Sequence record: NC_019410.1
Strand: one strand, 5' to 3'
DNA: 64,000 nt
Shown piece by piece: positions 2,191 through 53,739 of this stretch (positions are counted from its first letter, which is position 1; every line of letters begins with the position of its first letter). A program made the translations under genes and the position numbers. The notes beneath the pieces were generated by a model. The model had not been told where the DNA came from. It did not search any database and saw nothing but the letters and a program-made list of their open reading frames with translations.

Positions 2191-2222
2191 TTTACCTTTT
2201 GTTAACGTCTGGCCTCTAGGGT
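2191..2222 (+). promoter_or_regulatory. CtrA-box early promoter
   Basis: TTTA-N7-TTAAC, TAGGGT -10-like 15 bp after start of second half-site. Confidence 0.75.
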
Positions 2223-2270
2223 CGCCCTTGTCCCCGCCGCACTCCCGCGCCGGGCAAGGAGCTTCCCGCC

Positions 2271-2456
2271 ATGGTCCCCGACTCGATCATGAACCCCCGC
2301 GACCACTTCCACCGCCTGCGCGAGGAAACCGCCCGCGCTCTGGTCGAGGCCTTCGCCGAATCCGACCCCGGCGAGGATTACCGCGCCGAGGAAAAGGCCG
2401 GCGCGTGGGTTGTCGCCTATTACGACGCGGCGGGCGAATTCGTCGCCTATCTCTAG
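2271..2456 (+). CDS. Early hypothetical protein (61 aa)
   Basis: AAGGAG SD, phage-like codon use. Confidence 0.75.
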   Translation: MVPDSIMNPRDHFHRLREETARALVEAFAESDPGEDYRAEEKAGAWVVAYYDAAGEFVAYL

Positions 2457-2480
2457 CCGCCTTCGCCCCCTGGCGCCGCG

Positions 2481-2512
2481 TTAACGGTTTGTTAACATGT
2501 CGGCGCCAGGGT
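2481..2512 (+). promoter_or_regulatory. CtrA-box early promoter
   Basis: Perfect TTAA-CGGTTTG-TTAAC then CAGGGT. Confidence 0.8.
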
Positions 2513-2555
2513 CGCCCTAGCCCGGCGCGTCGCCGCGCCTTCGGAGAAAACCGCC

Positions 2556-3359
2556 ATGCTCTACACCCCCGCCGCCCGCCGCCTTCGCGGCTATCGCGAA
2601 ACCGCCGCGAAGAACGCCGAAATTCACGCCCGCCCGCACATGGCCGGCAACGTCGCCGGCTACAACGAGTCGGTGTGGCCGACGACGGCGCTAGGCGTCG
2701 CCGCCAAGGCCGGCGCCTTCAAGCGCCCCGAAACCGCCGGCAACTGGTCGGAGGATCGCAAAGCCTATTACGCCCCCGCGTGGCCGGCCGGCTGGCGCGT
2801 GCTGGGCACGGCCGAAGAGGTCTGCCGCAAGGAAGGCTCGCGCCGGGTGGAACATTCCGGATGGTACACGACGCCCGACGACTACAGCGCCACGCTTTCG
2901 GGCTATGTGCTGCAAATCCCCGCCCGCGACGGCCGCCCGCAATACGTCGCCGGGACCGCCCATAGTGAATGGGACGGGGTGACCCTCTACCCCGCCGACC
3001 GCTACGACAACCCGCTTGACGCGGCGAGCGCCGCCGACCGTCACGCCGAACGCGACGCCGAAGAGGAACGCGAATATCAAACCGCGTGGCAAGCGGGCCA
3101 GCGCTACGCCGAACTCGGCGCCGAAGCCAAGGAGGCCCGCAAGGAAGCGCTGGCGATCCTCGCCGAACGCCGCAAGGTCAAGGGGCTGGAAACCCCCGCC
3201 TTGTGCGGCGCGATCCGGGCGCAAGTCGCGGCCCTGCTAGGCCGGATCGAAGAGGCGCGCGCCTCGCGCGCCAAGCTCAAGGAAGGCGAGGACTCGCGCC
3301 TCATGTTCTACCCCTCCGCCGCCATGGTCGCGGCCTTCAATGACGGCGCGGCGTCGTGA
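2556..3359 (+). CDS. Early hypothetical protein (267 aa)
   Basis: GGAG SD; long ORF with normal composition. Confidence 0.85.
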   Translation: MLYTPAARRLRGYRETAAKNAEIHARPHMAGNVAGYNESVWPTTALGVAAKAGAFKRPETAGNWSEDRKAYYAPAWPAGWRVLGTAEEVCRKEGSRRVEHSGWYTTPDDYSATLSGYVLQIPARDGRPQYVAGTAHSEWDGVTLYPADRYDNPLDAASAADRHAERDAEEEREYQTAWQAGQRYAELGAEAKEARKEALAILAERRKVKGLETPALCGAIRAQVAALLGRIEEARASRAKLKEGEDSRLMFYPSAAMVAAFNDGAAS

Positions 3360-3565
3360 AGGTCGCCCGCGATAGCTTCGCCGTGTTCTGGACCCTCCCG
3401 CAAGGCGGGGTCCAATTTCACGCCGACATAAAACGGGCGCTCTATCCGACCGCCCGCGACGCCGCCCGCGCTTTTAGCGCCATGTTCCCCCGTGACCGGG
3501 TCCGGAGCGTCCGCGACGCCTCCGGCCGCTTCCTGGCCTTCAAGGAGTCCGCCCCGTGCGCCTGA
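3356..3565 (+). CDS. Early hypothetical protein (69 aa)
   Basis: GTGA overlap with upstream stop. Confidence 0.7.
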   Translation: MKVARDSFAVFWTLPQGGVQFHADIKRALYPTARDAARAFSAMFPRDRVRSVRDASGRFLAFKESAPCA

Positions 3566-3837
3566 CAAGCTACAACGTCAACGGAACCGGCTTTAAGGGC
3601 GGCTCCGCCCCGCCCGTCCCCGCCCAAGGCCTGACCGGTCACGCCGACGGCTTGAACCTTTGGGTTCCCTCGCGCGAGCATATCGCCGCCATGCTCCCGC
3701 AACGCTGGCGCCACGCCTTCGCCCGCGCGTCGTTTTGGTATGACGCGCACGACAATAAAAAGCCGTGTCGCGCCGACCTCTACGACTCGCGCGGCCGGTA
3801 CCTGACTCAGGTCTGGGCGCACCCGGTTTTCAGCTAG
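3556..3837 (+). CDS. Early hypothetical protein (93 aa)
   Basis: AAGGAG SD before GTG. Confidence 0.75.
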   Translation: MRLTSYNVNGTGFKGGSAPPVPAQGLTGHADGLNLWVPSREHIAAMLPQRWRHAFARASFWYDAHDNKKPCRADLYDSRGRYLTQVWAHPVFS

Positions 3838-3844
3838 GCCAGGA

Positions 3845-3872
3845 CGCCCCGGAAAATCTTCCGGGGCGTTTA
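3845..3872 (+). terminator. Hairpin terminator overlapping next promoter
   Basis: ACGCCCCGGAA...TTCCGGGGCGT followed by T-rich tract. Confidence 0.65.
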
Positions 3873-3900
3873 CCTTTTGTTAACCTCTGGCCTCTAGGGT
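3869..3900 (+). promoter_or_regulatory. CtrA-box early promoter
   Basis: TTTA-CCTTTTG-TTAAC, TAGGGT at 3895. Confidence 0.75.
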
Positions 3901-3958
3901 GACTTTCGCCGCCGGGCAATCCCGCCCGCCGGACCCTCTTTCAAGGATTGCTCCCGTC

Positions 3959-5008
3959 ATGACCTCTCATTCCATGGTCGCGCACCGTTGGGCGCAGGAC
4001 GACGAGAACGGCCGCACCGCGCGCGGCTTCAACATGTATTTCGAGCGCTACGGGCGCGGCGCCGACCGCGTCAACGTGATTTTTTCCTACGGGACTCACT
4101 TCCCGGCCGCCGCCTTCGTGACCGACGCGCACGGCCGCCGCGTGGTTCTGGTGACGACTCGCGGCTACAGCGTTTCGACCGCGAAACACCTTTCCCACAT
4201 CCGCCGCGCCATCCCGTCCGGGACCCCCTGCTTTTCCGTGCCGCACGTGTCGCGGATGCACAAGCCGGGCGGGTCGGGCGACTTCCACGGGGACAACCTG
4301 CGCGCCTATGTCGAGAGCGCCGCCGGCCTCGCCGAAAAGGCCAAGCGCGCCCGCGTCAACGGCCCTTGGCTGCTTAGCCAAGCCCGCGAAACCCTCGCCG
4401 AAGCGCAACGCTACGCCGACGCCTTCAAGCTGAAAACCAAGGTTCCGGCCTTGGAAGACGTCGCCGGCCAATGGGCGAAGATGACGGCCGCCAAGGCGCG
4501 GGCCGAAGCCAAGGCCAAGCGTGACGCCGAAAAGGCCGCCAAGGCGCGCCGCGAAGCCGAACGGCTCGCCGACGCCGAAGCCTTCGCCGCTTGGATGCGC
4601 GGCGAGCGCCAGAGCGCCCCGTTTAGCTACCGGGTGCGCGATGACGGGACCGTCTATCTTCGCCGCTTCCGGGGCGTGGTCCGCGACCTGCGCAGCCAAG
4701 AGCGCGACGGCTCGCGCGTCGATGAACTGCAAACCTCGCAAGGCGCGGCCGTGCCGTGGGAACACGCGGTCAAGGCCTTCCGGTTCATCAAGCTTTGCCG
4801 CGAACGCGGCGAGAGCTTCCACCGCAACGGCCGGGTGATTCGCGTCGGACACTTCCAAGTTGACGCGATCAGCCCGAACGGGGACATGACGGCCGGTTGT
4901 CACCGGTTCGCGTGGGATGAAATCGAACGCCTCGCCAGGGCCGAAGGGGTTTTCGACCTCCCCGCCGACGCTGGCGCCGTCGAAACCCGGCAAGCCGAAC
5001 CGGCCTAA
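3959..5008 (+). CDS. Early hypothetical protein (~349 aa)
   Basis: ATG 3959 after AAGGA; ORF-track start at 3899 lies within the promoter. Confidence 0.85.
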   Translation: MTSHSMVAHRWAQDDENGRTARGFNMYFERYGRGADRVNVIFSYGTHFPAAAFVTDAHGRRVVLVTTRGYSVSTAKHLSHIRRAIPSGTPCFSVPHVSRMHKPGGSGDFHGDNLRAYVESAAGLAEKAKRARVNGPWLLSQARETLAEAQRYADAFKLKTKVPALEDVAGQWAKMTAAKARAEAKAKRDAEKAAKARREAERLADAEAFAAWMRGERQSAPFSYRVRDDGTVYLRRFRGVVRDLRSQERDGSRVDELQTSQGAAVPWEHAVKAFRFIKLCRERGESFHRNGRVIRVGHFQVDAISPNGDMTAGCHRFAWDEIERLARAEGVFDLPADAGAVETRQAEPA

Positions 5009-5063
5009 GCCTCCCCGCCCCTCTCGCGCCCCGGCTCCCCGCCGGGGCGTTTTCGTGTACGCG

Positions 5064-5095
5064 GTAACCTTTTGTTAACTTCTGGCCTCTAGGGT
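5064..5095 (+). promoter_or_regulatory. CtrA-box early promoter
   Basis: GTAA-CCTTTTG-TTAAC, TAGGGT at 5090. Confidence 0.75.
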
Positions 5096-5143
5096 GACTT
5101 TCGCCGCCGGGCAATCCCGCCCGCCGGCCAAGGATCGCAGACT

Positions 5144-5443
5144 ATGAATCTTTTCGTTGTCGCCATTGACCCCGCCCTCATCCCTTCGGCCGCCGGCTTC
5201 GTGGTCGCCTCCCCCTACGGGTGCGGCAAGTGGCGCGCGTGCGTCGGGAGCGAGGCGGACATGATCGCGCTTCGCGACAAGATGCGCCGCGCGCACCCGG
5301 CCCCGGAAGGCTACAGCGTCCAGCCCCTGGCGTCGTTCCTGGCCTATCTGGAGACGGTCGGGGATAGCCCTTATGACCGGTTCCGCGCCCATGACGCCGC
5401 CGCCCGCATCCTTGACACCCTGACGACGCATCTCGCCGCCTAG
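5144..5443 (+). CDS. Early hypothetical protein (99 aa)
   Basis: AAGGA SD. Confidence 0.8.
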   Translation: MNLFVVAIDPALIPSAAGFVVASPYGCGKWRACVGSEADMIALRDKMRRAHPAPEGYSVQPLASFLAYLETVGDSPYDRFRAHDAAARILDTLTTHLAA

Positions 5444-5501
5444 CCCCGCCAAGCCCCCGGCCGCGCGCCGGGGGCGCTTTCCCTCGAAAGGATCGCCGAC
5501 C

Positions 5502-5813
5502 ATGACAACCCGTCTTATCGCCGTTCGCGGCCCGACCGCCGCCGAACTCGCCGACCCGTCCAGCCGCGCGGGCGGCGCCGAAGTCGTTTTCGAGCGCCGC
5601 GACCGCGAAGGCCGCACGCGCCTTGTGTTCGCCTCGACCTGCTACGGCTCATATCAGCAATGGGGCGAAACCCGCGACGTGCTCGCCGACAACGTCGAGG
5701 CGGTCACGCTCTGGGCCGAAGGCATGGCGGCCGTTGCCGCCCTCATCGACGAGAGCGACGACGACGACGAGAGCGACGACGCCCCGGCCGAAGATGACGA
5801 CGGGGAGGCGTGA
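5502..5813 (+). CDS. Early hypothetical protein, acidic tail (103 aa)
   Basis: AAGGA SD; Asp/Glu-rich C-terminus. Confidence 0.8.
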   Translation: MTTRLIAVRGPTAAELADPSSRAGGAEVVFERRDREGRTRLVFASTCYGSYQQWGETRDVLADNVEAVTLWAEGMAAVAALIDESDDDDESDDAPAEDDDGEA

Positions 5814-5816
5814 GCC

Positions 5817-6236
5817 ATGCGCACAACCAAGGCTCAACGCTTCGCCGCCATCGCCTTTGACGCCCTGGCCAAGGCCCTAAGCGAGCCGCGCCAAGCCGTC
5901 GCCCGCGTGACCAAATGGGAGGGCGCGGGCCATAGCTTCGCCAACCTGCAACGCGATTATGAGCGGTACGGCCCCGGCGCCCGCTCATGGTTCGGCCGGG
6001 CTGAAATGCGCTTCTTTGGGACGCGCCTAGAGGCCGCGCCGCTGGATTTCCCGGCGCTGGGCTGCACCCTCTTTCTGACCTCCGAAACCCCGCCCGGCGC
6101 CGGCCGGGTCTGGACCCTTCGCGCCTATGTCTGGGCTTCGGCCGATATCACCACGCTAACCCATGGCGACGAAACCGACGCGGCGACCGCGCAAGCGGCC
6201 TTTGACCTGCTTTGGCGGGTCCTTTCCGGACAGTAA
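5817..6236 (+). CDS. Early hypothetical protein (139 aa)
   Basis: GGAGG SD, operon spacing. Confidence 0.8.
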   Translation: MRTTKAQRFAAIAFDALAKALSEPRQAVARVTKWEGAGHSFANLQRDYERYGPGARSWFGRAEMRFFGTRLEAAPLDFPALGCTLFLTSETPPGAGRVWTLRAYVWASADITTLTHGDETDAATAQAAFDLLWRVLSGQ

Positions 6237-6264
6237 CCTTTTGTTAACTTCTGCCCGCTAGGGT
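6233..6264 (+). promoter_or_regulatory. CtrA-box early promoter
   Basis: GTAA-CCTTTTG-TTAAC, TAGGGT at 6259. Confidence 0.75.
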
Positions 6265-6314
6265 CTTCTTGCGGCCGGGCAATCCCGCCCGGCCGCATCT
6301 TGGAGACAGCGCCC

Positions 6315-6587
6315 ATGACCCGCGCTCAAGCCCTCGCCGACATGAACGCCCTTCCCGGTATCATCGCCTCCTTTGAGCGCGAGACGGGCGAATATCGCGT
6401 GACCCTGCGCTTTGGCCCGCTCCCCATGGGGCGCGGCGCCCAAGAGTGGATGCGCGCGCGCCGCGAAGCCGTCGCCAGCTACAGCGACGACAAGGCCGAC
6501 GCCCTGGCCACCGCCCGCGACATGTCCGCCCGCTGGGAGGCGATGAGCGCCGAAGAGCGTTCGCGCCTCTATCACAACCCCGCCTAA
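6315..6587 (+). CDS. Early hypothetical protein (90 aa)
   Basis: GGAG SD before ATG 6315. Confidence 0.8.
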   Translation: MTRAQALADMNALPGIIASFERETGEYRVTLRFGPLPMGRGAQEWMRARREAVASYSDDKADALATARDMSARWEAMSAEERSRLYHNPA

Positions 6588-6653
6588 GACCCCGCGCGCC
6601 GCCCTGGCCTTCGCCGGGGCGGCTCCCTCAACCCCTCGCAAGGATCGCACCCC

Positions 6654-6938
6654 ATGACCGCCCGTAAGCCCCTGACCAAGGAACAAAAGGCCCGCCGCCG
6701 CGCGACCCGCCGCGCCGCCCGCCTCAACTGGTCGGATGAGCGCCGCGCTCGCGAATTCGAGCGTCAAGCCCGCTTCTTCCTGATGATCGCCACCCGCGCC
6801 CAAGGCGCCGGCCAAGGCCAGGAAGCCGCCCGCCTCGCCACGGTCGCACAACGCAAGGTGACTAACTGGCGCATGGCGCAGGCCTGCGCCCGGATTAACG
6901 CCCTGGCCGCGCATCCGTTCGCGGCCGTGGTCGCCTAA
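6654..6938 (+). CDS. Early basic hypothetical protein (94 aa)
   Basis: AAGGA SD; Arg/Ala-rich. Confidence 0.75.
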   Translation: MTARKPLTKEQKARRRATRRAARLNWSDERRAREFERQARFFLMIATRAQGAGQGQEAARLATVAQRKVTNWRMAQACARINALAAHPFAAVVA

Positions 6939-6951
6939 GGAGGCCCGCCCG

Positions 6952-7134
6952 ATGACGCACCCTCACGCCCTGGCGCTGATCGCCCTCGCCGAAAAGGTGT
7001 TACCGCTTACCCGGCTGCACCCGCTCGACCAACGCGCCGCCGCCGTCGATCTAATCGGCGACCTCTACCGCCTCGCCGACGATATCGACGCGACCCCGCA
7101 AGCCCCCGCCCTGACGCAACCGAAGGCCGCCTAA
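6952..7134 (+). CDS. Early hypothetical protein (60 aa)
   Basis: AAGGAGG SD. Confidence 0.8.
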   Translation: MTHPHALALIALAEKVLPLTRLHPLDQRAAAVDLIGDLYRLADDIDATPQAPALTQPKAA

Positions 7135-7137
7135 GCC

Positions 7138-7728
7138 ATGAACCCGAACCGCTACCGCCTCGCGCCCCGCGACCGCTTCAGCCGTGAGCTTGCCGAAACG
7201 CTCTATCAGGCGGCCGAAGCCGTCGCCCGCGTGATTCCGCTCATGCCGGAGTCCGCCCCCGATGAGCGCCGCGCGCTGGGCAAGGTCCGCGCCGACCTTC
7301 TAACCCATAGCGCCGGCGCCCTTGTTCCCAAGCCGCCGGCCGCCGTGCTCGAAACCCTCGTTTGGGTTGTCGAGATGGCGCAAGATCGCGCGACTAACGC
7401 CGATTTCAACACCGCCCAAGAAGGACTCGACGAGCACGAGTCCCTAGCCTTTGTCGCCGACTGGCTGGAAGCCGAAGGCCAGGACGTGACGCCGATTCGC
7501 AACGCGCAACCGTCCGCCGACGCCCTGGCCGAACTCGCCGCCCGCCGCGACGCCGAACAAGCGGCGCTAGACGCCTTGGAGGCCGAAGCCCTGGCCGAAG
7601 CGCCGGGCGACGTGATCACCGACGCCTTGCGCCCCTATCTGGGCGCCGCCCTGGCCGAAAACCACGCCGACGACGTGCTAGACGCCCTCACGCGCGCCGG
7701 CTTCCAAATCACCCGCAAGGAGGCCTAA
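7138..7728 (+). CDS. Early hypothetical protein (196 aa)
   Basis: Operon spacing, helical composition. Confidence 0.8.
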   Translation: MNPNRYRLAPRDRFSRELAETLYQAAEAVARVIPLMPESAPDERRALGKVRADLLTHSAGALVPKPPAAVLETLVWVVEMAQDRATNADFNTAQEGLDEHESLAFVADWLEAEGQDVTPIRNAQPSADALAELAARRDAEQAALDALEAEALAEAPGDVITDALRPYLGAALAENHADDVLDALTRAGFQITRKEA

Positions 7729-7733
7729 AGCCC

Positions 7734-8312
7734 ATGACCGACTCCGCCAAGATCACCGGCGCGCTCGCGCTACTCGCCATCGCGGCCGATAATCTCCGCC
7801 AAGGCCCGGCCATGTCCAAGGCCGCCGACAACGTCACCAACGTCTGTAACTACGCCCTGACGCGCGCGACCATGCTCAAGGCCGCCGACCAAATCGGCGA
7901 GGCGCTGGAGGCGCTGGGCGCCCTGCAAGCGGGCGGCTATGTGATCGCCCGCCGCCGCGACGTTTTCACCGATGCGGGCGAGAAGCTGGGCGACCTGTTG
8001 GCGGCGCTTTATGACGCCGTCCCGAACTACGCCGTAAGATCGCAGCGCCTCGCCGACGCCCTGAGTCCCGCGCGAAATTACGTCTATCAGCCCCGGTTCC
8101 GGGTCAAGCTGGACGCCGCGCCCGGCGCGCTTTTGACCGACTGCGACACGGGCGCAACGGTCTATTTCCAGCCGGGCGACGACGCCGACGCCTTCCGGGC
8201 CGAATTCGCCCCGTGGGTTCACGCCGCCAACGTGACGGCCGAAGGCGCGGCCCTGGCCTCGATGATGAACCCGACCGCCGAAGAGTATTTCAGCCCCGCC
8301 ACGGGGGTCTAA
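7734..8312 (+). CDS. Early hypothetical protein (192 aa)
   Basis: AAGGAGG SD. Confidence 0.8.
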   Translation: MTDSAKITGALALLAIAADNLRQGPAMSKAADNVTNVCNYALTRATMLKAADQIGEALEALGALQAGGYVIARRRDVFTDAGEKLGDLLAALYDAVPNYAVRSQRLADALSPARNYVYQPRFRVKLDAAPGALLTDCDTGATVYFQPGDDADAFRAEFAPWVHAANVTAEGAALASMMNPTAEEYFSPATGV

Positions 8313-8317
8313 CGCCC

Positions 8318-8620
8318 GTGGCCCTGACCTTCGCCCCGCAATCGACGCGCTACGCCGTGGAAGTCCCCGAACGCGACTTTCTGGCCCTGACCCGCGCCGA
8401 GGAAATTCTAGCCCCTGGCCCCTATCTGGAGCCGTCGCTTAGCGAGCGTTTGGAGGCGCAAGCCGGCGTTTGGGATGTCGAGTATAACGGCCATTTCGGC
8501 GCGGCCGTTTACTTGACGCTCGACGTTGACGCCGACTCCCCGGCCGCCCGCGACGCCCTGGCCTCGATCATCGCCGACCAACTGGCCAAGGCCAAGGCGT
8601 GGAAGCGCCAGCCCGCCTAA
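8318..8620 (+). CDS. Early hypothetical protein (100 aa)
   Basis: GTG 5 nt after upstream stop; ORF-track start at 8213 overlaps upstream gene. Confidence 0.7.
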   Translation: MALTFAPQSTRYAVEVPERDFLALTRAEEILAPGPYLEPSLSERLEAQAGVWDVEYNGHFGAAVYLTLDVDADSPAARDALASIIADQLAKAKAWKRQPA

Positions 8621-8730
8621 GTCATCATTCCTATCGTCTATGACTTGTCACCGGCCGAACTCTTGCCCGGTGACAGTCTGGGCAAGTAAAGCTCACTCTG
8701 GATTTTATGACTTAGCGCAAAGGATTGAAA

Positions 8731-8805
8731 TTGCTCGAAAAATTCCTCGAAGCTCACAAAGTTGTTTTCTGGCTGCTTTTGCTGGCCTGTTTGTGGCGCT
8801 TTTAA
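8731..8805 (+). CDS. 24-aa hydrophobic peptide MLEKFLEAHKVVFWLLLLACLWRF in low-GC patch
   Basis: AAAGGA SD 6 nt before TTG 8731; stop TAA forms first half of CtrA box. Confidence 0.45.
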   Translation: MLEKFLEAHKVVFWLLLLACLWRF

Positions 8806-8834
8806 CGGTTTGTTAACCCCTGGCCCTCTAGGGT
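8802..8834 (+). promoter_or_regulatory. CtrA-box early promoter
   Basis: Perfect TTAA-CGGTTTG-TTAAC, TAGGGT at 8829. Confidence 0.8.
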
Positions 8835-8888
8835 CGAATTCCCGGCGCGGCAATCCCGCCGCCCGGCCTTCCTTCGGAGCTTCTGATC

Positions 8889-9335
8889 ATGTTCGCTTCC
8901 GTGACCCTTCCCGCCCATGACGCCCAAGGCCTGAGCCTCGAAACCGTCCACATGGTTTTCGCCCGCGAACTGGCGCAACATTTCGACCACGTGATTTCCG
9001 CCCCCGTGGTCGAAAGCTGGCGCGACGAGGACACCGGCGCCGACCACGCGCAAGCCGCCGTTTGCTTCACCGTCTCGGCGACCCCCGCCGCGTGGGAAGC
9101 CAAGGGCGGGCGCCTCGCGCGCCGGCTGGAAAACCTCGCCGCGCGCTATGCCGCCGACTGCGACGCCCCGGCCCTGACTGTCACCCACTGCGACGGCCAA
9201 ACGGTCTATGTCGGCGCTCTGGAAGCCCTGGCGCGCCCCGCCCCGGTGCAAGGCCCGACCCGTGAGGCGGACCCGGCTTTCCTCCCCCGCCAGCGTGAGG
9301 ACAAGGCCGCCCGCTTCGATCGCCTGACCGCCTAG
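8889..9335 (+). CDS. Early hypothetical protein (148 aa)
   Basis: GGAG SD. Confidence 0.8.
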   Translation: MFASVTLPAHDAQGLSLETVHMVFARELAQHFDHVISAPVVESWRDEDTGADHAQAAVCFTVSATPAAWEAKGGRLARRLENLAARYAADCDAPALTVTHCDGQTVYVGALEALARPAPVQGPTREADPAFLPRQREDKAARFDRLTA

Positions 9336-9393
9336 CCCCTGGCCTCCCCCTAGCGCACCGCCCCTAGAAAGGCGGTGCGCTTTTCTGTGTCTG

Positions 9394-9426
9394 TTTACTT
9401 GTTGTTAAGGAATAGCCTGCTAGTGT
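9394..9426 (+). promoter_or_regulatory. Degenerate CtrA-box early promoter
   Basis: TTTA-CTTGTTG-TTAA, TAGTGT at 9421. Confidence 0.6.
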
Positions 9427-9477
9427 CCCCTTGTTGGCGGACGCATCCCGCGCCCGCCCCTTTCTGGATCGCTCCCC

Positions 9478-9870
9478 ATGGCTCGCCCCTCTGACCTGCT
9501 CAACGTCAACGCCGCCCGCGTCCTGGCTTGCCTTGAGCCTATCGCCGCCGCCGCTAAGACCGCCCCGGCCGCCGACCGCGCCGCCCTTTCCTACCTGCTC
9601 GACGCTGGCGAGTATGTCGCCGCGTGGCGCCGCAACCTCACGGAAACCGACCGCCGCAAGGCCTATGGCGCGGCCTGCGCCGCCGAAGCCCTGGCGCTCG
9701 CTAACGCCTATCAGCCCGCCACCCTGCAAGGCGGCGCCGTCCGCCGCGCTCTGGGCGCCTATGCCGCCGCCCTAAAGGTCCTGCTAGACGGGGAGCCGGT
9801 CAAGGCGGTGCGCGCCGCCGAAGGCGCGGCGCTTTCGGTCCGCGCTCGCTACGCCAACACCCGCCTTTAA
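9478..9870 (+). CDS. Early hypothetical protein (130 aa)
   Basis: Ala-rich helical ORF. Confidence 0.75.
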   Translation: MARPSDLLNVNAARVLACLEPIAAAAKTAPAADRAALSYLLDAGEYVAAWRRNLTETDRRKAYGAACAAEALALANAYQPATLQGGAVRRALGAYAAALKVLLDGEPVKAVRAAEGAALSVRARYANTRL

Positions 9871-9898
9871 CCTCTTGTTAACACCTCCCGGCTATGGT
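9867..9898 (+). promoter_or_regulatory. CtrA-box early promoter
   Basis: TTAA-CCTCTTG-TTAAC, TATGGT at 9893. Confidence 0.8.
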
Positions 9899-9924
9899 CG
9901 GGAGGTCGCAAGGAGACACCCGAC

Positions 9925-10182: not shown

Positions 10183-10565
10183 GCCACCTAGTATCTTTTT
10201 TGATTCGGAGGGACCCAAAGGCCCCCTACGTTAACCATTTTTGGCGGCGCCCCCCGGCGCCTACGGATCATTTTGAAAAATCGCGTTGACAAAACCGGCA
10301 ATCAACGTCAAGGATCGTGACGTCGAGCAGCCCTGCCCGACACGGGCGGCCCGCCCCCCATTCGCCGCCCGACGGCCCCATCTCCGACGTCCACCGGGGG
10401 TGGGGCCTTTTCATTTTCCAGCCGGGGGACCCAAGGCCCCCTGGCTTTGTAAATCGGATCGCCAAAAGGTCCCTCCAAAAATTTTCAAAACCAGAAACGC
10501 CCGGTTGACACTTCCAGACTTGGCTTCTAAGTGTTGCGCGACGACACGCAATCGAGGAGCCCGTC

Positions 10566-11312
10566 ATGACCGACGACATCACCAACGCCACCCCCTACCA
10601 CAAGTTCACGCCCTACGACTGGCGCGGCTATATCGAGTTCCCGGCCACGGTCGATCTGGCCAAGCTGGTCCAGACCGTCTACGCCCGCTCGACCCCCAGG
10701 GGCCTGGGCTTCCTCCACTTCACCCCCGGCGATCTGGACGAGGGCCGCGTCACCACCGCCATCTATGACGCCCAGGAACGCTTCACCGAGGCCGAAGCCC
10801 AGTCGGCGCTCGACTTCAACGGCGAGCCCCGCGACAGCCGTCACCGCTTCTTCGACTTCGACTATGTCGACGGCCGGGCGGTGAAGTTCAACCTCTACCG
10901 CGACCTCAACGATCGCCGCTTCTACTGCGAACTCGACTGGTACGACCATTCCGAGTATGACGTCTTCGATCTGGTCGCCACCCTGCGCGACCTGTCCGAC
11001 GCCGACACCAAGGCCTATCTCGACGCGGTCGCCGCCGCCAAGGCCCAGAAAAAGGCCGACGAGTTCGCCGCGACCGAAGCGCGCGCCCTCCTCTTGGTCC
11101 GCGCCCTGAAAAACGTCATGGGCGGCTCGGAGACCATCCCCCGCGAGGAGTTCTATCGCCGCTACGGCGGCAAGCCGAGCGTCATGTACGCCGCCGACGC
11201 CCAGGATCGCCCCTATTTCGACTACGCGTTCAACCGCGACCACACCATTGTCACCGTCCGGCCGGACGAGGGCGGCGAGGCCCTCTACGCCCGCGACGCC
11301 GTCCCGGCCTGA
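10566..11312 (+). CDS. Hypothetical protein (248 aa)
   Basis: GAGGAG SD, TTGACA promoter ~10504. Confidence 0.85.
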   Translation: MTDDITNATPYHKFTPYDWRGYIEFPATVDLAKLVQTVYARSTPRGLGFLHFTPGDLDEGRVTTAIYDAQERFTEAEAQSALDFNGEPRDSRHRFFDFDYVDGRAVKFNLYRDLNDRRFYCELDWYDHSEYDVFDLVATLRDLSDADTKAYLDAVAAAKAQKKADEFAATEARALLLVRALKNVMGGSETIPREEFYRRYGGKPSVMYAADAQDRPYFDYAFNRDHTIVTVRPDEGGEALYARDAVPA

Positions 11313-29341: not shown

Positions 29342-29607
29342 ACCCCTCCCGCCGCCGCGCGATGCTGGCCCAGATCGAGACCTGCAAGCAGTCGAGCTTG
29401 GTCGTCGAGGAGGCGACCAAGCACTGGCGGCGCGATTACGAGGCCTATCACCACGTGATGGTCTCCGGGCAGGTGGGGCGCTATTCCGAGGAGGCCCTGA
29501 AGGCGCTTACCCTTCAGGCCTCCGCCACCTACGAGGCGCTCTTGGACGCGCTCCGCGTACACGCCAACAACCTCGAACGCCTGCGTTCGCTGCGAGGCCA
29601 TTTCTGA
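29338..29607 (+). CDS. Hypothetical coiled-coil protein (89 aa)
   Basis: ATGA overlap. Confidence 0.7.
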   Translation: MNPSRRRAMLAQIETCKQSSLVVEEATKHWRRDYEAYHHVMVSGQVGRYSEEALKALTLQASATYEALLDALRVHANNLERLRSLRGHF

Positions 29608-30047
29608 TGCGCTACTACCTCGACACCGAGTTCAACGGCTTTGGCGGGGAACTGATCTCCCTGGCCCTGGTCCGCGAGGACGGCAACTGGCTCTATCTGA
29701 TCTACGAGCCGACCCAGCCGATCGATCCTTGGGTCGCCGAGAACGTCATGCCGATCCTGCACCTGCCGGGCCTGCTGCCGATCCACGTCAACCAGGAGGC
29801 CGGGGCCGAGTTCATCGCCCACTTCCTGGCCGGCGACGACGCGGTCGAGATCATCACCGACTGGCCCGACGACATCCGCTATTTCTGCCAGTCGATCATC
29901 TCCGGACCGGGCATGATGTCGCGCCTCGTCCCGAGCCTGAAGTTCTCGATGATCCGCGCCGACGCTTACCCGACCACCCTGCCGGGCGCGGTGCAGCACA
30001 ACGCCGTCTGGGATGCGCGCGCCCTGCGCCACCTCATGCTCTCGTGA
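29607..30047 (+). CDS. DEDDh 3'-5' exoribonuclease-like protein
   Basis: YLDTEF...ISLALV...HNAVWDARAL. Confidence 0.8.
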   Translation: MRYYLDTEFNGFGGELISLALVREDGNWLYLIYEPTQPIDPWVAENVMPILHLPGLLPIHVNQEAGAEFIAHFLAGDDAVEIITDWPDDIRYFCQSIISGPGMMSRLVPSLKFSMIRADAYPTTLPGAVQHNAVWDARALRHLMLS

Positions 30048-49479: not shown

Positions 49480-49552
49480 GCTGCTGCGCCTGGATCGGCG
49501 CCGGCCCCTTGGTATGGGGAAGTAGAAGGTTCAATTCCTTCCAGCAGCACCA
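49480..49552 (+). tRNA. tRNA-Thr (GGT)
   Basis: CCCC-TTGGTAT-GGGG arm, G1C2 acceptor; reduced D-arm. Confidence 0.75.
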
Positions 49553-50212: not shown

Positions 50213-50283
50213 GGGGTATGCGCAGGGCGCAGGCATCCTTTGCAAGGAAGTCGGGGTGGGTTCGAGTCCCACATACTCCACCA
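50213..50283 (+). tRNA. tRNA-Ala (TGC)
   Basis: G3:U70 pair, A73 CCA; short D-arm. Confidence 0.8.
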
Positions 50284-52357: not shown

Positions 52358-52432
52358 TCCAGTCAATGCACAAGGTGTGCAGCGGCACTGTTAATGCCTG
52401 TGAGCCCGGTTCGATTCCGGGGTCTGGAGCCA
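52358..52432 (+). tRNA. tRNA-Asn (GTT)
   Basis: GGCA-CTGTTAA-TGCC, G73 CCA. Confidence 0.85.
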
Positions 52433-52634: not shown

Positions 52635-52712
52635 GCGCGGGTAGCTCAATGGACCCAGAGCAGCCGTCTTCTACACGGTGGGTTGGGGGTTCGAATCCCT
52701 CCCCGTGCGCCA
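52635..52712 (+). tRNA. tRNA-Arg (TCT)
   Basis: Cloverleaf, encoded CCA. Confidence 0.9.
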
Positions 52713-52749
52713 AACTTGACAGGCGATGTCGAATCGCCGAGGATCAAAC

Positions 52750-53047
52750 CGTAGGCCTCTTCCCGTGGGCCTGACATATACGTCCGCCAGCACTGCCATT
52801 CCGCGTCAGCGGGCGCGGCGCGAGGAAGGGTTAACCCCTCGTTGTCACGCAGTCGGGTGGTGTGGACGTCCCAACGTGATCTTCGAACGCGGCATGCCGT
52901 GGAGGGGTGATCGGATGGCGAACCAAGGGACACCTTCTTATCCTGGCCTGGGTCGCATGAGGCTCCGCTGGGAGAAACGGCCTGACCCGACCGGAGGTGC
53001 GTTCAGGATGCCGGCTCCCCATGCCAGAGCCTCGTGGACTAGGGTCT
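52750..53047 (+). ncRNA. Candidate ~300-nt structured ncRNA
   Basis: TTGACA-N17-GAGGAT promoter at 52716; long-range complementarities; no credible ORF. Confidence 0.45.
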
Positions 53048-53070
53048 GAAATTTTTCTGGCGCTGATGTG

Positions 53071-53203
53071 TTGACACTCCTCGGAGGCTCGGCTAAAACC
53101 AGCAGCGTCAGAGCGGCGTTGGACCACGAGGTCCGCCGCGAGCTTCTGCGTTGTCGTCAGGAACGGCCCGCCAGCAATCCCGCTGGCGGGTCGTTTCGTT
53201 TTG
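53071..53203 (+). ncRNA. Promoter plus ~95-nt small RNA ending in CAATCCCG-loop hairpin
   Basis: TTGACA-N17-TAAAAC; hairpin GGACC/GGTCC; 11-bp stem 53164-53193 with T-rich tail. Confidence 0.55.
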
Positions 53204-53239
53204 GGCGCAATGCGACGTTCAGTCCAACCATGGGTAGTG

Positions 53240-53277
53240 TCATGAATCTTGACTTTCGGCGCTTATTCCGGTAGCTT
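53240..53277 (+). promoter_or_regulatory. Promoter TCATGAATC-TTGACT-N17-TAGCTT
   Basis: Variant of recurrent motif. Confidence 0.7.
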
Positions 53278-53322
53278 TCCCGACATCAGCAAACGCTCAC
53301 AAGTCGGGGACCGAGAGCCGTC

Positions 53323-53739
53323 ATGTCGCAAGACCACAACGGCTCGTCCTCGGGCCAAGAACGCATCTACCAGAAACTGGATGAGCTTGGCTCCATGCAC
53401 GCGCGCACCCGTGAAGATATTGCCCGCATCCAGGAGATGATGCGAGCGGTCGGTTCGTCGCAGGAGCGGATCGAAAAGCGCCAGGACCATTTCGAGCGCG
53501 AAATCTGGCGTGAGATGGAAGATCGCGCCGCGCGCACGAGCGCCCAACTCGACGAGATCAAGAGCCACACCAACCTGCGCATCGAGGAGATCGAGGCCAA
53601 GGTCGACACGATCCGCGAGGAACGGATCGCCGAGAAGGCCCAGTGGCGCGGCCCCGAGAAGGCCATCGCCGCCCTGGTCGCCGTCGCCGGGGCCATCGCC
53701 GCCTTCGCCACGATCCTCACTTTCCTGAAGGGACACTAG
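53323..53739 (+). CDS. Coiled-coil protein with C-terminal TM (138 aa)
   Basis: Heptad-like composition, hydrophobic tail. Confidence 0.75.
   Translation: MSQDHNGSSSGQERIYQKLDELGSMHARTREDIARIQEMMRAVGSSQERIEKRQDHFEREIWREMEDRAARTSAQLDEIKSHTNLRIEEIEAKVDTIREERIAEKAQWRGPEKAIAALVAVAGAIAAFATILTFLKGH

Follow-up and report, generated by a model that had tools for sequence, protein, structure and literature searches.

A candidate small RNA of Caulobacter phage CcrKarma with complementarity to the leaders of a repeated promoter class

Locus and architecture of the predicted RNA gene

The stretch of DNA analyzed here (64,000 nt; hereafter, the window) corresponds to bases 1 to 64000 of Caulobacter phage CcrKarma (JX100811.1; 100% identity, coordinates unchanged), a phiCbK-like virulent siphophage with a 221.8-kb record, a unit genome of 211.9 kb, and a terminal repeat of 10.25 kb. 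The unit of interest (53071–53204) sits between a cluster of 25 tRNA genes, the last of which is tRNA-Arg (52635–52712), and gp085 (53323–53739), with a distance of 450 nt from the last tRNA to the unit; gp085 is followed on its 3′ side by gp086 and then by a PhoH-like gene. The sole GenBank annotation within the unit is a predicted rho-independent terminator at 53160–53197. In the phiCbK genome paper, Rfam gave only tRNAs as functional RNAs, and promoters and hairpins were not discussed (PMC3556154). Our search of the literature found no description of an RNA at 53105–53204 or of the leader motif GACGACAAC considered below. The features of the region are listed here in order of position.

53048–53057, (+) strand: A/T-rich tract GAAATTTTTC, about −57 to −48 from the predicted start, conserved in 10 of 10 aligned phiCbK-like genomes
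53071–53076, (+) strand: −35 hexamer TTGACA, invariant in 10 genomes
53092–53099, (+) strand: −10 region GCTAAAAC, replaced by GCTACAAC in BL57, BL10, and Rogue
53105–53204, (+) strand: predicted small RNA of ~100 nt, with a putative start placed from the −10 position and a putative end placed from the terminator tail
53105–53151, (+) strand: 5′ stem-loop with the apical hairpin GGACC-ACGA-GGTCC at 53121–53134
53150–53158, (+) strand: putative seed GTTGTCGTC, a linker between the two hairpins that is predicted to be single-stranded, with high unpaired probability
53160–53197, (+) strand: intrinsic terminator hairpin of 16 bp, from RNAfold and also annotated in GenBank
53198–53204, (+) strand: U-rich 3′ tail GTTTTGG, read from the sequence
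53234–53253, (+) strand: separate promoter-like repeat GTAGTGTCATGAATCTTGAC, between the terminator and gp085 and outside the small RNA

The promoter proposed in a first-pass annotation of this DNA (TTGACA at 53071–53076 and a Caulobacter-like −10, GCTAAAAC, at 53092–53099) was recovered, with the reported spacer of 17 nt when the −10 hexamer is taken as TAAAAC. We take this −10 region to match the Caulobacter sigma-73 consensus. Both promoter elements and the A/T tract are conserved, whereas BL57, BL10, and Rogue differ in the spacer that separates the hexamers. The tract GAAATTTTTC resembles an UP element and, judging by position alone, may act as one; in phage Bajun, a T-run occupies the equivalent position. 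Moreover, the −35 belongs to a wider promoter context, TGGC..(A)TGTGTTGACA, which occurs at no fewer than 13 further places in the CcrKarma genome. The repeat GTAGTGTCATGAATCTTGAC has at least 12 copies in the same genome, located upstream of portal, capsid, lysis, and other genes.

The predicted ~100-nt RNA has a minimum free energy of −57.5 kcal/mol. In its 5′ stem-loop, GGACC (53121–53125) is paired with GGTCC (53130–53134), which bears out the hairpin proposed earlier. The second hairpin had been described as 11 bp long (53164–53193); the hairpin itself stands, and RNAfold extends its length to 16 bp (53160–53197), with the flanked segment folding at −33.4 kcal/mol. Its loop, AATCCC with a C-G closing pair, produces exactly the reported 8-mer CAATCCCG at 53175–53182, and the A-U at the second pair from the loop and the T-rich tail are present as well. 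This tail, TTTCGTTTT, lies 3′ of the terminator and is partly paired into an extended stem. Thus, 53160–53197 combines a GC-rich hairpin and a U-rich tract in the manner of an intrinsic terminator; a simple, strict terminator scan missed it because the T run is interrupted. A promoter and an intrinsic terminator placed around a short noncoding unit are the architecture of a base-pairing small RNA (sRNA) gene.

Conservation of the RNA and distribution of its terminator loop

When the intergenic regions of ten phiCbK-like phages (genera Shapirovirus and Poindextervirus) were aligned, the tRNA-proximal half showed strong divergence and large indels, and the sequence was nearly invariant from 53043 on. 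The linker proved the most conserved part of the RNA, with the seed GTTGTCGTC invariant in all ten aligned genomes. The apical stem displayed compensatory changes, from GGACC/GGTCC to GGGCC/GGCCC (BL57) and to GGGGCC/GGCCCC (BL10 and Rogue), the outer 5′ stem preserved its pairing through G-C to G-U changes, and the terminator stem accumulated one-sided changes (G-U, G-C, and A-U) with pairing maintained. MAFFT misregistered the first hairpin in BL10 and Rogue, so that the tool's count of 1 compensatory pair in the Karma group is too low.

No ATG or GTG was found inside 53105–53204, and the length differences of the relatives break frame (a net +2 in BL10; a 1-nt deletion and a 4-nt insertion ~30 nt apart in Rogue). 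A 68-aa open reading frame at 53068–53274 was rejected as coding, given that it starts 5′ of the −35 and that the indels of the relatives preserve no frame. A search of Rfam 15 at the gathering threshold and at E ≤ 10 returned no family for the small RNA; over the 64-kb window, Rfam 15 gave tRNAs only, and the best matches within 52700–53330 fell on the opposite strand (E = 0.17 and 1.6), far under threshold. By blastn, the unit was present in all 26 phiCbK-like Caulobacter phage records of the collection. Taken together, the conservation, the promoter architecture, the covarying hairpins, and the lack of a conserved reading frame agree with the stand-alone small RNA of the first-pass annotation, and the reading of 53105–53204 as a conserved, previously unannotated small RNA gene that goes beyond a mere terminator is well supported; the gene is presumably expressed.

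We then examined the terminator loop. CAATCCCG occurs 9 times in the window compared to 3.5 expected copies, a number that 0 of 100 shuffles reached, and 5 of the 9 copies form hairpin loops: the one in the small RNA and those at 3917, 5112, 6280, and 8851. The latter four belong to leader hairpins in the terminal repeat, each ~25 nt after a promoter-like motif, TTGTTAAC...CTAGGGT.

3909–3932, (+) strand: terminal-repeat leader hairpin with loop CAATCCCG, 5′ of gp008
5103–5128, (+) strand: terminal-repeat leader hairpin with loop CAATCCCG, 5′ of gp009
6270–6297, (+) strand: terminal-repeat leader hairpin with loop CAATCCCG, 5′ of gp012
8842–8866, (+) strand: terminal-repeat leader hairpin with loop CAATCCCG, 5′ of gp018

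The sharing of one loop by the small RNA and by early leaders 44 kb away was correctly noted in the first-pass annotation. A related loop is found in none of the other nine annotated terminators of the window; because these terminators are unrelated in loop sequence and the copies are in excess, the loop identity is real and does not reflect a general property of terminators. Across the homologues of the RNA (described below), the terminator loop reads as follows.

Karma: C-AATCCC-G
Rogue: C-ATCCC-G
BL10: C-TTCCC-G
Bajun: TCCCGT
Colossus: TCCCGGT
Bambus: CCCCCGT
Metagenomic contig L149: CTCCGGT
Metagenomic contig L155: CCCCGGT

Since a C-rich core (TCCC, CCCG, or CTCC) is found in all homologues despite the turnover of the stem, the loop is probably under selection. 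Conservation of the loop in relatives therefore holds for its core, and the exact CAATCCCG is altered in Rogue, BL10, and Colossus. The leader loops are themselves mixed, both in Karma (AATCCC four times, ATCCC, ACTCCC, and TCGC) and in Colossus (ATCGG six times, ATCCC three times, CGG three times, ACCCC, ACACC, and ACTTCC). In Rogue and BL10, the RNA loop has changed (to ATCCC and TTCCC, respectively), and most leader hairpins still display CAATCCCG; the Colossus RNA loop, TCCCGGT, is found in none of the Colossus leader loops. The RNA loop does not track the leader loops in relatives, contrary to what a decoy of those leaders would be expected to do. Two possible pairings of the loop were also considered. 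Pairing with the Shine-Dalgarno (SD) sequence of gp008 (AGCAATCC with GGATTGCT, 8 nt) was dropped, as ~8 such 8-mers are expected by chance over all gene starts, and the complement CGGGATTG in the phage tRNA-Val (51877–51884) is within chance expectation.

A repeated leader motif and its antisense copy

A repeated promoter class came to light because the rest of the CcrKarma record was read for more copies of the loop. Its members have the form TGGC..(A)TGTGTTGACA-N16/17-CTAGAA, and the mRNAs predicted to start from them carry GACGACAAC, of which the seed GTTGTCGTC at 53150–53158 is the exact reverse complement. With both strands counted, GACGACAAC has 19 copies in the 211.9-kb unit genome, compared to 2.0 ± 1.2 expected. 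Specifically, 18 of the 19 copies have the same orientation as the gene downstream, and the 19th, the only antisense copy, is the one in the small RNA. The position of the motif relative to the promoter is nearly fixed: 17 of the 18 sense copies follow a TTGAC −35 at a distance of 35–37 nt (TTGCCA takes its place for the remaining copy), which puts GACGACAAC at, or no more than ~3 nt from, the inferred transcription start. Likewise, 17 of the 18 copies have an SD-like GGAG or AGGA within 0–4 nt and a start codon 10–16 nt after the motif; the exceptional copy, at 191566, is followed by a hairpin in place of the SD and start codon. All 18 exact targets (record positions 114908–195431) lie beyond the 64-kb window, in which a single candidate target was found.

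10505–10568, (+) strand: gp021 leader, with a TTGACA promoter and GACGACAC at 10540–10547, then GGAG and ATG

Predicted hybrids between 53136–53160 and the 18 leaders span both the motif and the SD, with a mean energy of −26.8 kcal/mol, and the gp021 leader gave a predicted duplex of −25.9 kcal/mol with the same segment. In comparison, shuffled leaders mostly gave −13 to −17 kcal/mol (mean z of the real leaders, −3.8), and terminal-repeat and late-type leaders about −13 kcal/mol. An unconstrained genome-wide duplex scan, in which motif leaders made up 5 of the top 45 windows with the RNA's own antisense locus excluded, was dropped as a target predictor, being too noisy in GC-rich DNA (66% GC). 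The RNA therefore has what characterizes the seed of a base-pairing sRNA, namely, an accessible, conserved segment with 18 exact targets adjoining the SD. For the Karma group, the predicted fold leaves only ~8–9 nt single-stranded and places the anti-SD half within the 5′ stem of the RNA itself. The gene class to which this complementarity points consists of operons on TTGACA-type promoters, mostly outside the window, and would not be that of the terminal-repeat leaders.

The RNA and the motif were subsequently compared across relatives. In Rogue, which shares about 63% DNA identity with phiCbK (PMC3556154), a 50-kb sample contained 14 exact copies of the motif, all in promoter-leader context, and the RNA seed is identical to that of CcrKarma. 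Homologous units are present at the syntenic site in Colossus, CcrPW, Bajun, Bambus, Kabachok, and two metagenomic viral contigs, with Brevundimonas phages accounting for six homologues (Bajun, Bambus, Kabachok, and three more found by blastn). The syntenic order is tRNA cluster, unit, a conserved AATCTTGAC promoter-like repeat, the gp085 homologue, and PhoH. All of the distant homologues have a TTGACA promoter, and their terminator stems are entirely different in sequence, with compensatory double changes in 7 of 21 pairs and 0 broken pairs. In every one of their linkers, a TCGTCA core is preceded, a few bases to its 5′ side, by an anti-SD sequence (CCTCC or CTCC).

The linker and the leaders have also changed in parallel. 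The Colossus RNA linker, CCTCCTGATCGTCAAG, carries TGATCGTCA, and 5 of 10 Colossus leaders of the TTGACA class in a 50-kb sample have (T)GACGATC(A) before the SD; in these 50 kb, the coding (plus) strand has 12 copies of GACGATCA and the minus strand a single one, and GACGACAAC has one copy per strand. Similarly, Bambus leaders such as TTGACGACGAAGGAGGAC mirror the Bambus linker GTCCTCCGTCGTCAAG. When mean duplex energies were compared for all combinations of RNA and leader set, the cognate RNA gave the lowest value for the Karma, Rogue, Colossus, and Bajun leaders, and thus in 3 of 4 lineages. The fourth, Bambus, is ambiguous, with −20.3 for its leaders and their own RNA versus −21.3 with the Colossus RNA, and several Bajun leaders carry the Karma 9-mer and fit the Karma seed better than Bajun's own. 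CcrSC (Bertelyvirus) has no RNA unit at the syntenic site, only a terminator after the tRNAs, and the leaders of its TTGACA-CTAGAA promoters lack the motif in a 50-kb sample. A 15-mer linker scan of IMG/VR returned mostly chance matches, the real ones being Rogue and BL10 only, and a PhoH-based locus search added one metagenomic relative, which is without the RNA. Within this sampling, the RNA and the leader motif appear to be present together, to change together, and to be absent together. The change of seed and target is clear between Karma/Rogue and Colossus, a pattern equally compatible with a DNA site.

Alternative explanations, proposed mechanism, and known systems

The first-pass annotation had proposed that the RNA titrates a factor binding the early leaders. 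On this reading, CAATCCCG would mimic the terminal-repeat leader hairpins, and an abundant RNA would sequester a protein or RNA that recognizes the loop. A strong-looking promoter, an 8-nt loop identical to those of four leader hairpins with different stems (for which a chance match is unlikely), its restriction to the small RNA among the annotated terminators of the window, and the persistence of a C-rich core in every homologue despite replaced stems, which suggests selection on the loop, all speak for it. However, each RNA offers a single motif, the leader loops of one genome differ among themselves (Karma and Colossus), and loop and leaders do not covary: Rogue and BL10 have altered RNA loops but retain CAATCCCG in most leader copies, and the Colossus loop is absent from the Colossus leaders. 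Furthermore, no candidate binding partner was identified, and the linker, rather than the loop, is the most conserved part of the RNA. We consider titration quite improbable. It is also unlikely, though less so, that the unit holds no regulatory RNA and consists of the terminator of the tRNA cluster and a fortuitous or minor TTGACA promoter. Under this reading, GACGACAAC at +1 of early promoters would be an operator, bound as double-stranded DNA by a phage or host regulator, and GTTGTCGTC would be a copy of this operator in inverted orientation. The leader motif does lie at an operator-like fixed distance from its promoters, GenBank records only a terminator, the unit is 450 nt past the last tRNA, and the co-change in Colossus suits a DNA site as well as RNA pairing. 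What an operator leaves unexplained is the complement to the SD that flanks the inverted copy and that in Colossus and Bambus extends past the SD too (GGAGGCCC, GGAGGAC), the placement of the copy in an unpaired linker between two covarying hairpins, and the conservation of the −35, the −10, and the A/T tract amid a drifting spacer.

The conserved order of tRNA cluster, unit, gp085 homologue, and PhoH, from Karma to the Brevundimonas phages, would suit a cis-acting leader or attenuator of a gp085-gp086-PhoH operon, with the terminator ending transcription from 53071 except when read-through is induced. Nevertheless, no alternative antiterminator fold is evident for the 16-bp GC-rich terminator, a distinct and highly conserved promoter-like repeat intervenes between the terminator and gp085, and the complementarity to 18 distant leaders would go unexplained; such a role is very unlikely. 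Since phage sRNAs acting on host genes have been documented (bioRxiv 10.1101/2024.10.31.621285), the RNA could also act mainly on host Caulobacter mRNAs, like lambda PreS in E. coli, with the match to phage leaders being secondary or the leaders acting as sponges. This has a low probability in our judgment, as the seed is complementary to a motif that has 18 copies in mRNAs of the phage itself, all at the same defined position, and the RNA and the motif change and vanish together across phage lineages with the same host species.

We therefore favor, as the probable though not assured reading, that 53105–53204 encodes a trans-acting base-pairing sRNA that blocks ribosome binding on ~20 early phage operons. 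The host RNA polymerase would transcribe the sRNA from its own strong promoter, probably from the start of infection like the early operons, and the sRNA should outlast the early mRNAs because it is small and strongly structured. In the mRNAs from TTGACA-N17-CTAGAA cassette operons, the exposed linker would pair with the very first nucleotides (GACGACAAC) and with the SD next to them, an interaction that would be impossible if these mRNAs started downstream of the motif. Such pairing in vivo would prevent 30S binding and leave the early mRNAs exposed to decay, with faster decay being probable. As the stable RNA accumulates, the whole class may be shut off, which would aid the early-to-middle switch. 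The suggestion of the first-pass annotation that the RNA helps shut off early genes fits the antisense complementarity to the leaders, provided that pairing represses rather than protects the mRNAs. RNA-seq of phiCbK infection, with values reported per gene, identified gp216 (tgrL) as an early gene (PMC10688885), and tgrL, judging from gene order, appears to lie in an operon of the TTGACA-CTAGAA promoter class. As a wider and more tentative proposal, for which we see somewhat less than an even chance, a single RNA may mirror the 5′ leader common to every early operon that the host polymerase transcribes in a 220-kb virulent phage, and may silence these operons jointly, with the RNA and its ~20 leaders co-evolving across genera and the C-rich loop serving as a second functional site, possibly for a factor that also reads the terminal-repeat hairpins.

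The proposed RNA shares features with several known systems. P1/P7 c4 RNA and P4 CI RNA, both small RNAs of phages, act in trans on short, repeated sequences in phage transcripts, with which they pair to block a ribosome-binding site or to cause termination; they arise by processing from immunity operons of temperate elements, and their targets number one to a few, whereas the CcrKarma sRNA belongs to a virulent phage and has its own promoter and terminator and ~20 predicted cassette targets. Enterobacterial and Caulobacter sRNAs of the Hfq type and lambda PreS likewise have their own promoter, a 5′ hairpin, a short single-stranded seed, an intrinsic terminator with a U tail, and targets in translation initiation regions, but the predicted targets of the CcrKarma sRNA are the phage's own temporal gene class. 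Staphylococcal RsaE and RNAIII use C-rich loops of the UCCC type as seeds that pair with the SD, and the CcrKarma RNA similarly displays a C-rich, UCCC-type motif in a hairpin loop; in contrast to theirs, this loop fits GGAGG poorly, and the linker is the better complement. The analogy with CsrB drawn in the first-pass annotation extends only to a noncoding RNA that shows a hairpin-loop motif also present in mRNA leaders: CsrB and RsmZ have many GGA loops acting on CsrA/RsmA, whereas the CcrKarma RNA displays a single C-rich loop, lacks repeated GGA loops, and matches no Csr/Rsm family of Rfam at E ≤ 10. The small stable RNAs of T4 (species 1 and 2) lie in the T4 tRNA gene cluster, and the CcrKarma RNA gene is found at the end of a phage tRNA cluster; we know of no sequence similarity between them. 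The terminal-repeat leaders, as repeated promoter-plus-hairpin cassettes, resemble the promoter-stem-loop (PeSL) cassettes of T4-type phages, which are discussed as recombination modules and not as factor-binding leaders.

Temporal control in large virulent phages is usually ascribed to proteins, including sigma and anti-sigma factors, RegA/RegB, and modifiers of the polymerase. The endoribonuclease RegB of T4 cuts GGAG in the SD of early mRNAs (PMC9409239). RegB and RegA are phage-encoded early functions that inactivate many early mRNAs at the SD and ease the transition to later stages (PMC9409239), as proposed here for the CcrKarma RNA. The difference is that RegB and RegA are proteins, whereas the proposed CcrKarma effector is an RNA whose specificity would come from pairing with an SD-adjacent leader motif; by analogy, it would be an RNA counterpart of RegB. 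Both sRNAs that act by base pairing and antisense RNAs of phages have precedents; what would be new is a form that mirrors the leader shared by a whole temporal class of operons in its own phage and co-changes with it across genera. If this reading is true, it would explain the uniformity of these leaders and would add an RNA layer to phage temporal control, in which a whole promoter class is silenced via a shared leader. phiCbK and Caulobacter are well studied, with infection RNA-seq on record, and would provide a tractable model, and the genus-specific pairs of leader and seed would form a comparative data set for the co-evolution of an sRNA with a multigene target set.

An atypical leader-motif site and a second seed-like stretch

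The arrangement of the early leaders, in which a TTGACA-type promoter and the GACGACAAC motif are combined, was also found at one site of the Karma record beyond the first 64,000 bases, where a hairpin (GTCCGAAAT...ATTTCGGAC) takes the place of the Shine-Dalgarno (SD) sequence and start codon:

191530-191610 (~29530-29610 of piece L139): TTGACA-type promoter, GACGACAAC and hairpin

This site could represent either a structured leader or a further non-coding unit. Separately, the small-RNA homologue of the Brevundimonas phage Bambus carries near its 5′ end (3335-3350 of its locus, L144) a second seed-like stretch, CGTCGTCAG, which is not conserved in Kabachok and is therefore probably non-functional.

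A possible tRNA-like element upstream of the small RNA and predicted tRNAs in the tRNA cluster

Conserved blocks, such as GATCTTCGAACGCGGC.TGCCGTGGAGGGGTG and GGCCTGACCCGACC, are found within positions 52860-53045, separating tRNA-Arg from the small-RNA promoter. The corresponding position in Colossus carries an annotated pseudo-tRNA; in Bambus and in a metagenomic relative (L148, 1814-1896) it is taken by a tRNA-like sequence with a CCA end, on which ARAGORN made no call. The conserved stretch and its equivalents may represent a tRNA-like element of a degenerate or unusual kind.

Within the cluster itself, ARAGORN predicted three tRNAs that the GenBank annotation lacks, all of them below the Rfam tRNA threshold:

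49480-49552: tRNA-Thr(GGT)
50213-50283: tRNA-Ala(TGC)
52358-52432: tRNA-Ile(AAT)

The genome paper reported no Thr tRNAs in any of the phiCbK-like phages it covered (PMC3556154). A tRNA-Ile (AAT) is annotated in the matching stretch of the BL10 tRNA cluster.

Cassettes and repeat arrays of the terminal repeat

Promoter-like cassettes of the form TTGTTAA[C/G]-N..-CTAG[G/T]GT make up a family in the terminal repeat (window 2199-9900), with examples at the following positions:

2199, 2489, 3877, 5072, 6241, 8810, 9402 and 9875: TTGTTAA[C/G]-type cassettes

A GC-rich 5′ hairpin lies within ~10 nt downstream of each cassette and precedes an SD sequence and start codon; the hairpin stems covary, and a few C-rich types account for the loops. 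The cassettes, which resemble the promoter-stem-loop cassettes known from T4-type phages, are retained in phiCbK, BL57, Rogue, BL10 and Colossus. Also within the terminal repeat, close to the left genome end, copies of GTTAAC/TTAACC (e.g., GTTAAGGTTAACGC) and of GGGGACCCTGG are repeated in dense arrays (788-960 and 1900-2100), which phiCbK, Rogue, BL10 and BL57 retain. The sequences of these repeats point to CtrA-box-like half-sites or to signals for packaging or replication.

A third promoter-like repeat

The Karma genome also contains a third repeat of promoter-like sequence, GTAGTGTC[G/A]TGAATCTTGAC, which occurs at least 12 times, including at the following sites:

53234-53253: copy immediately preceding gp085
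~19594, 30584, 33334 and 54885: further copies

Genes with a copy upstream include portal, capsid and lysis genes, among others, and the AATCTTGAC core is kept out to the Brevundimonas phages. The repeat is probably a middle/late promoter class together with an upstream activator site.
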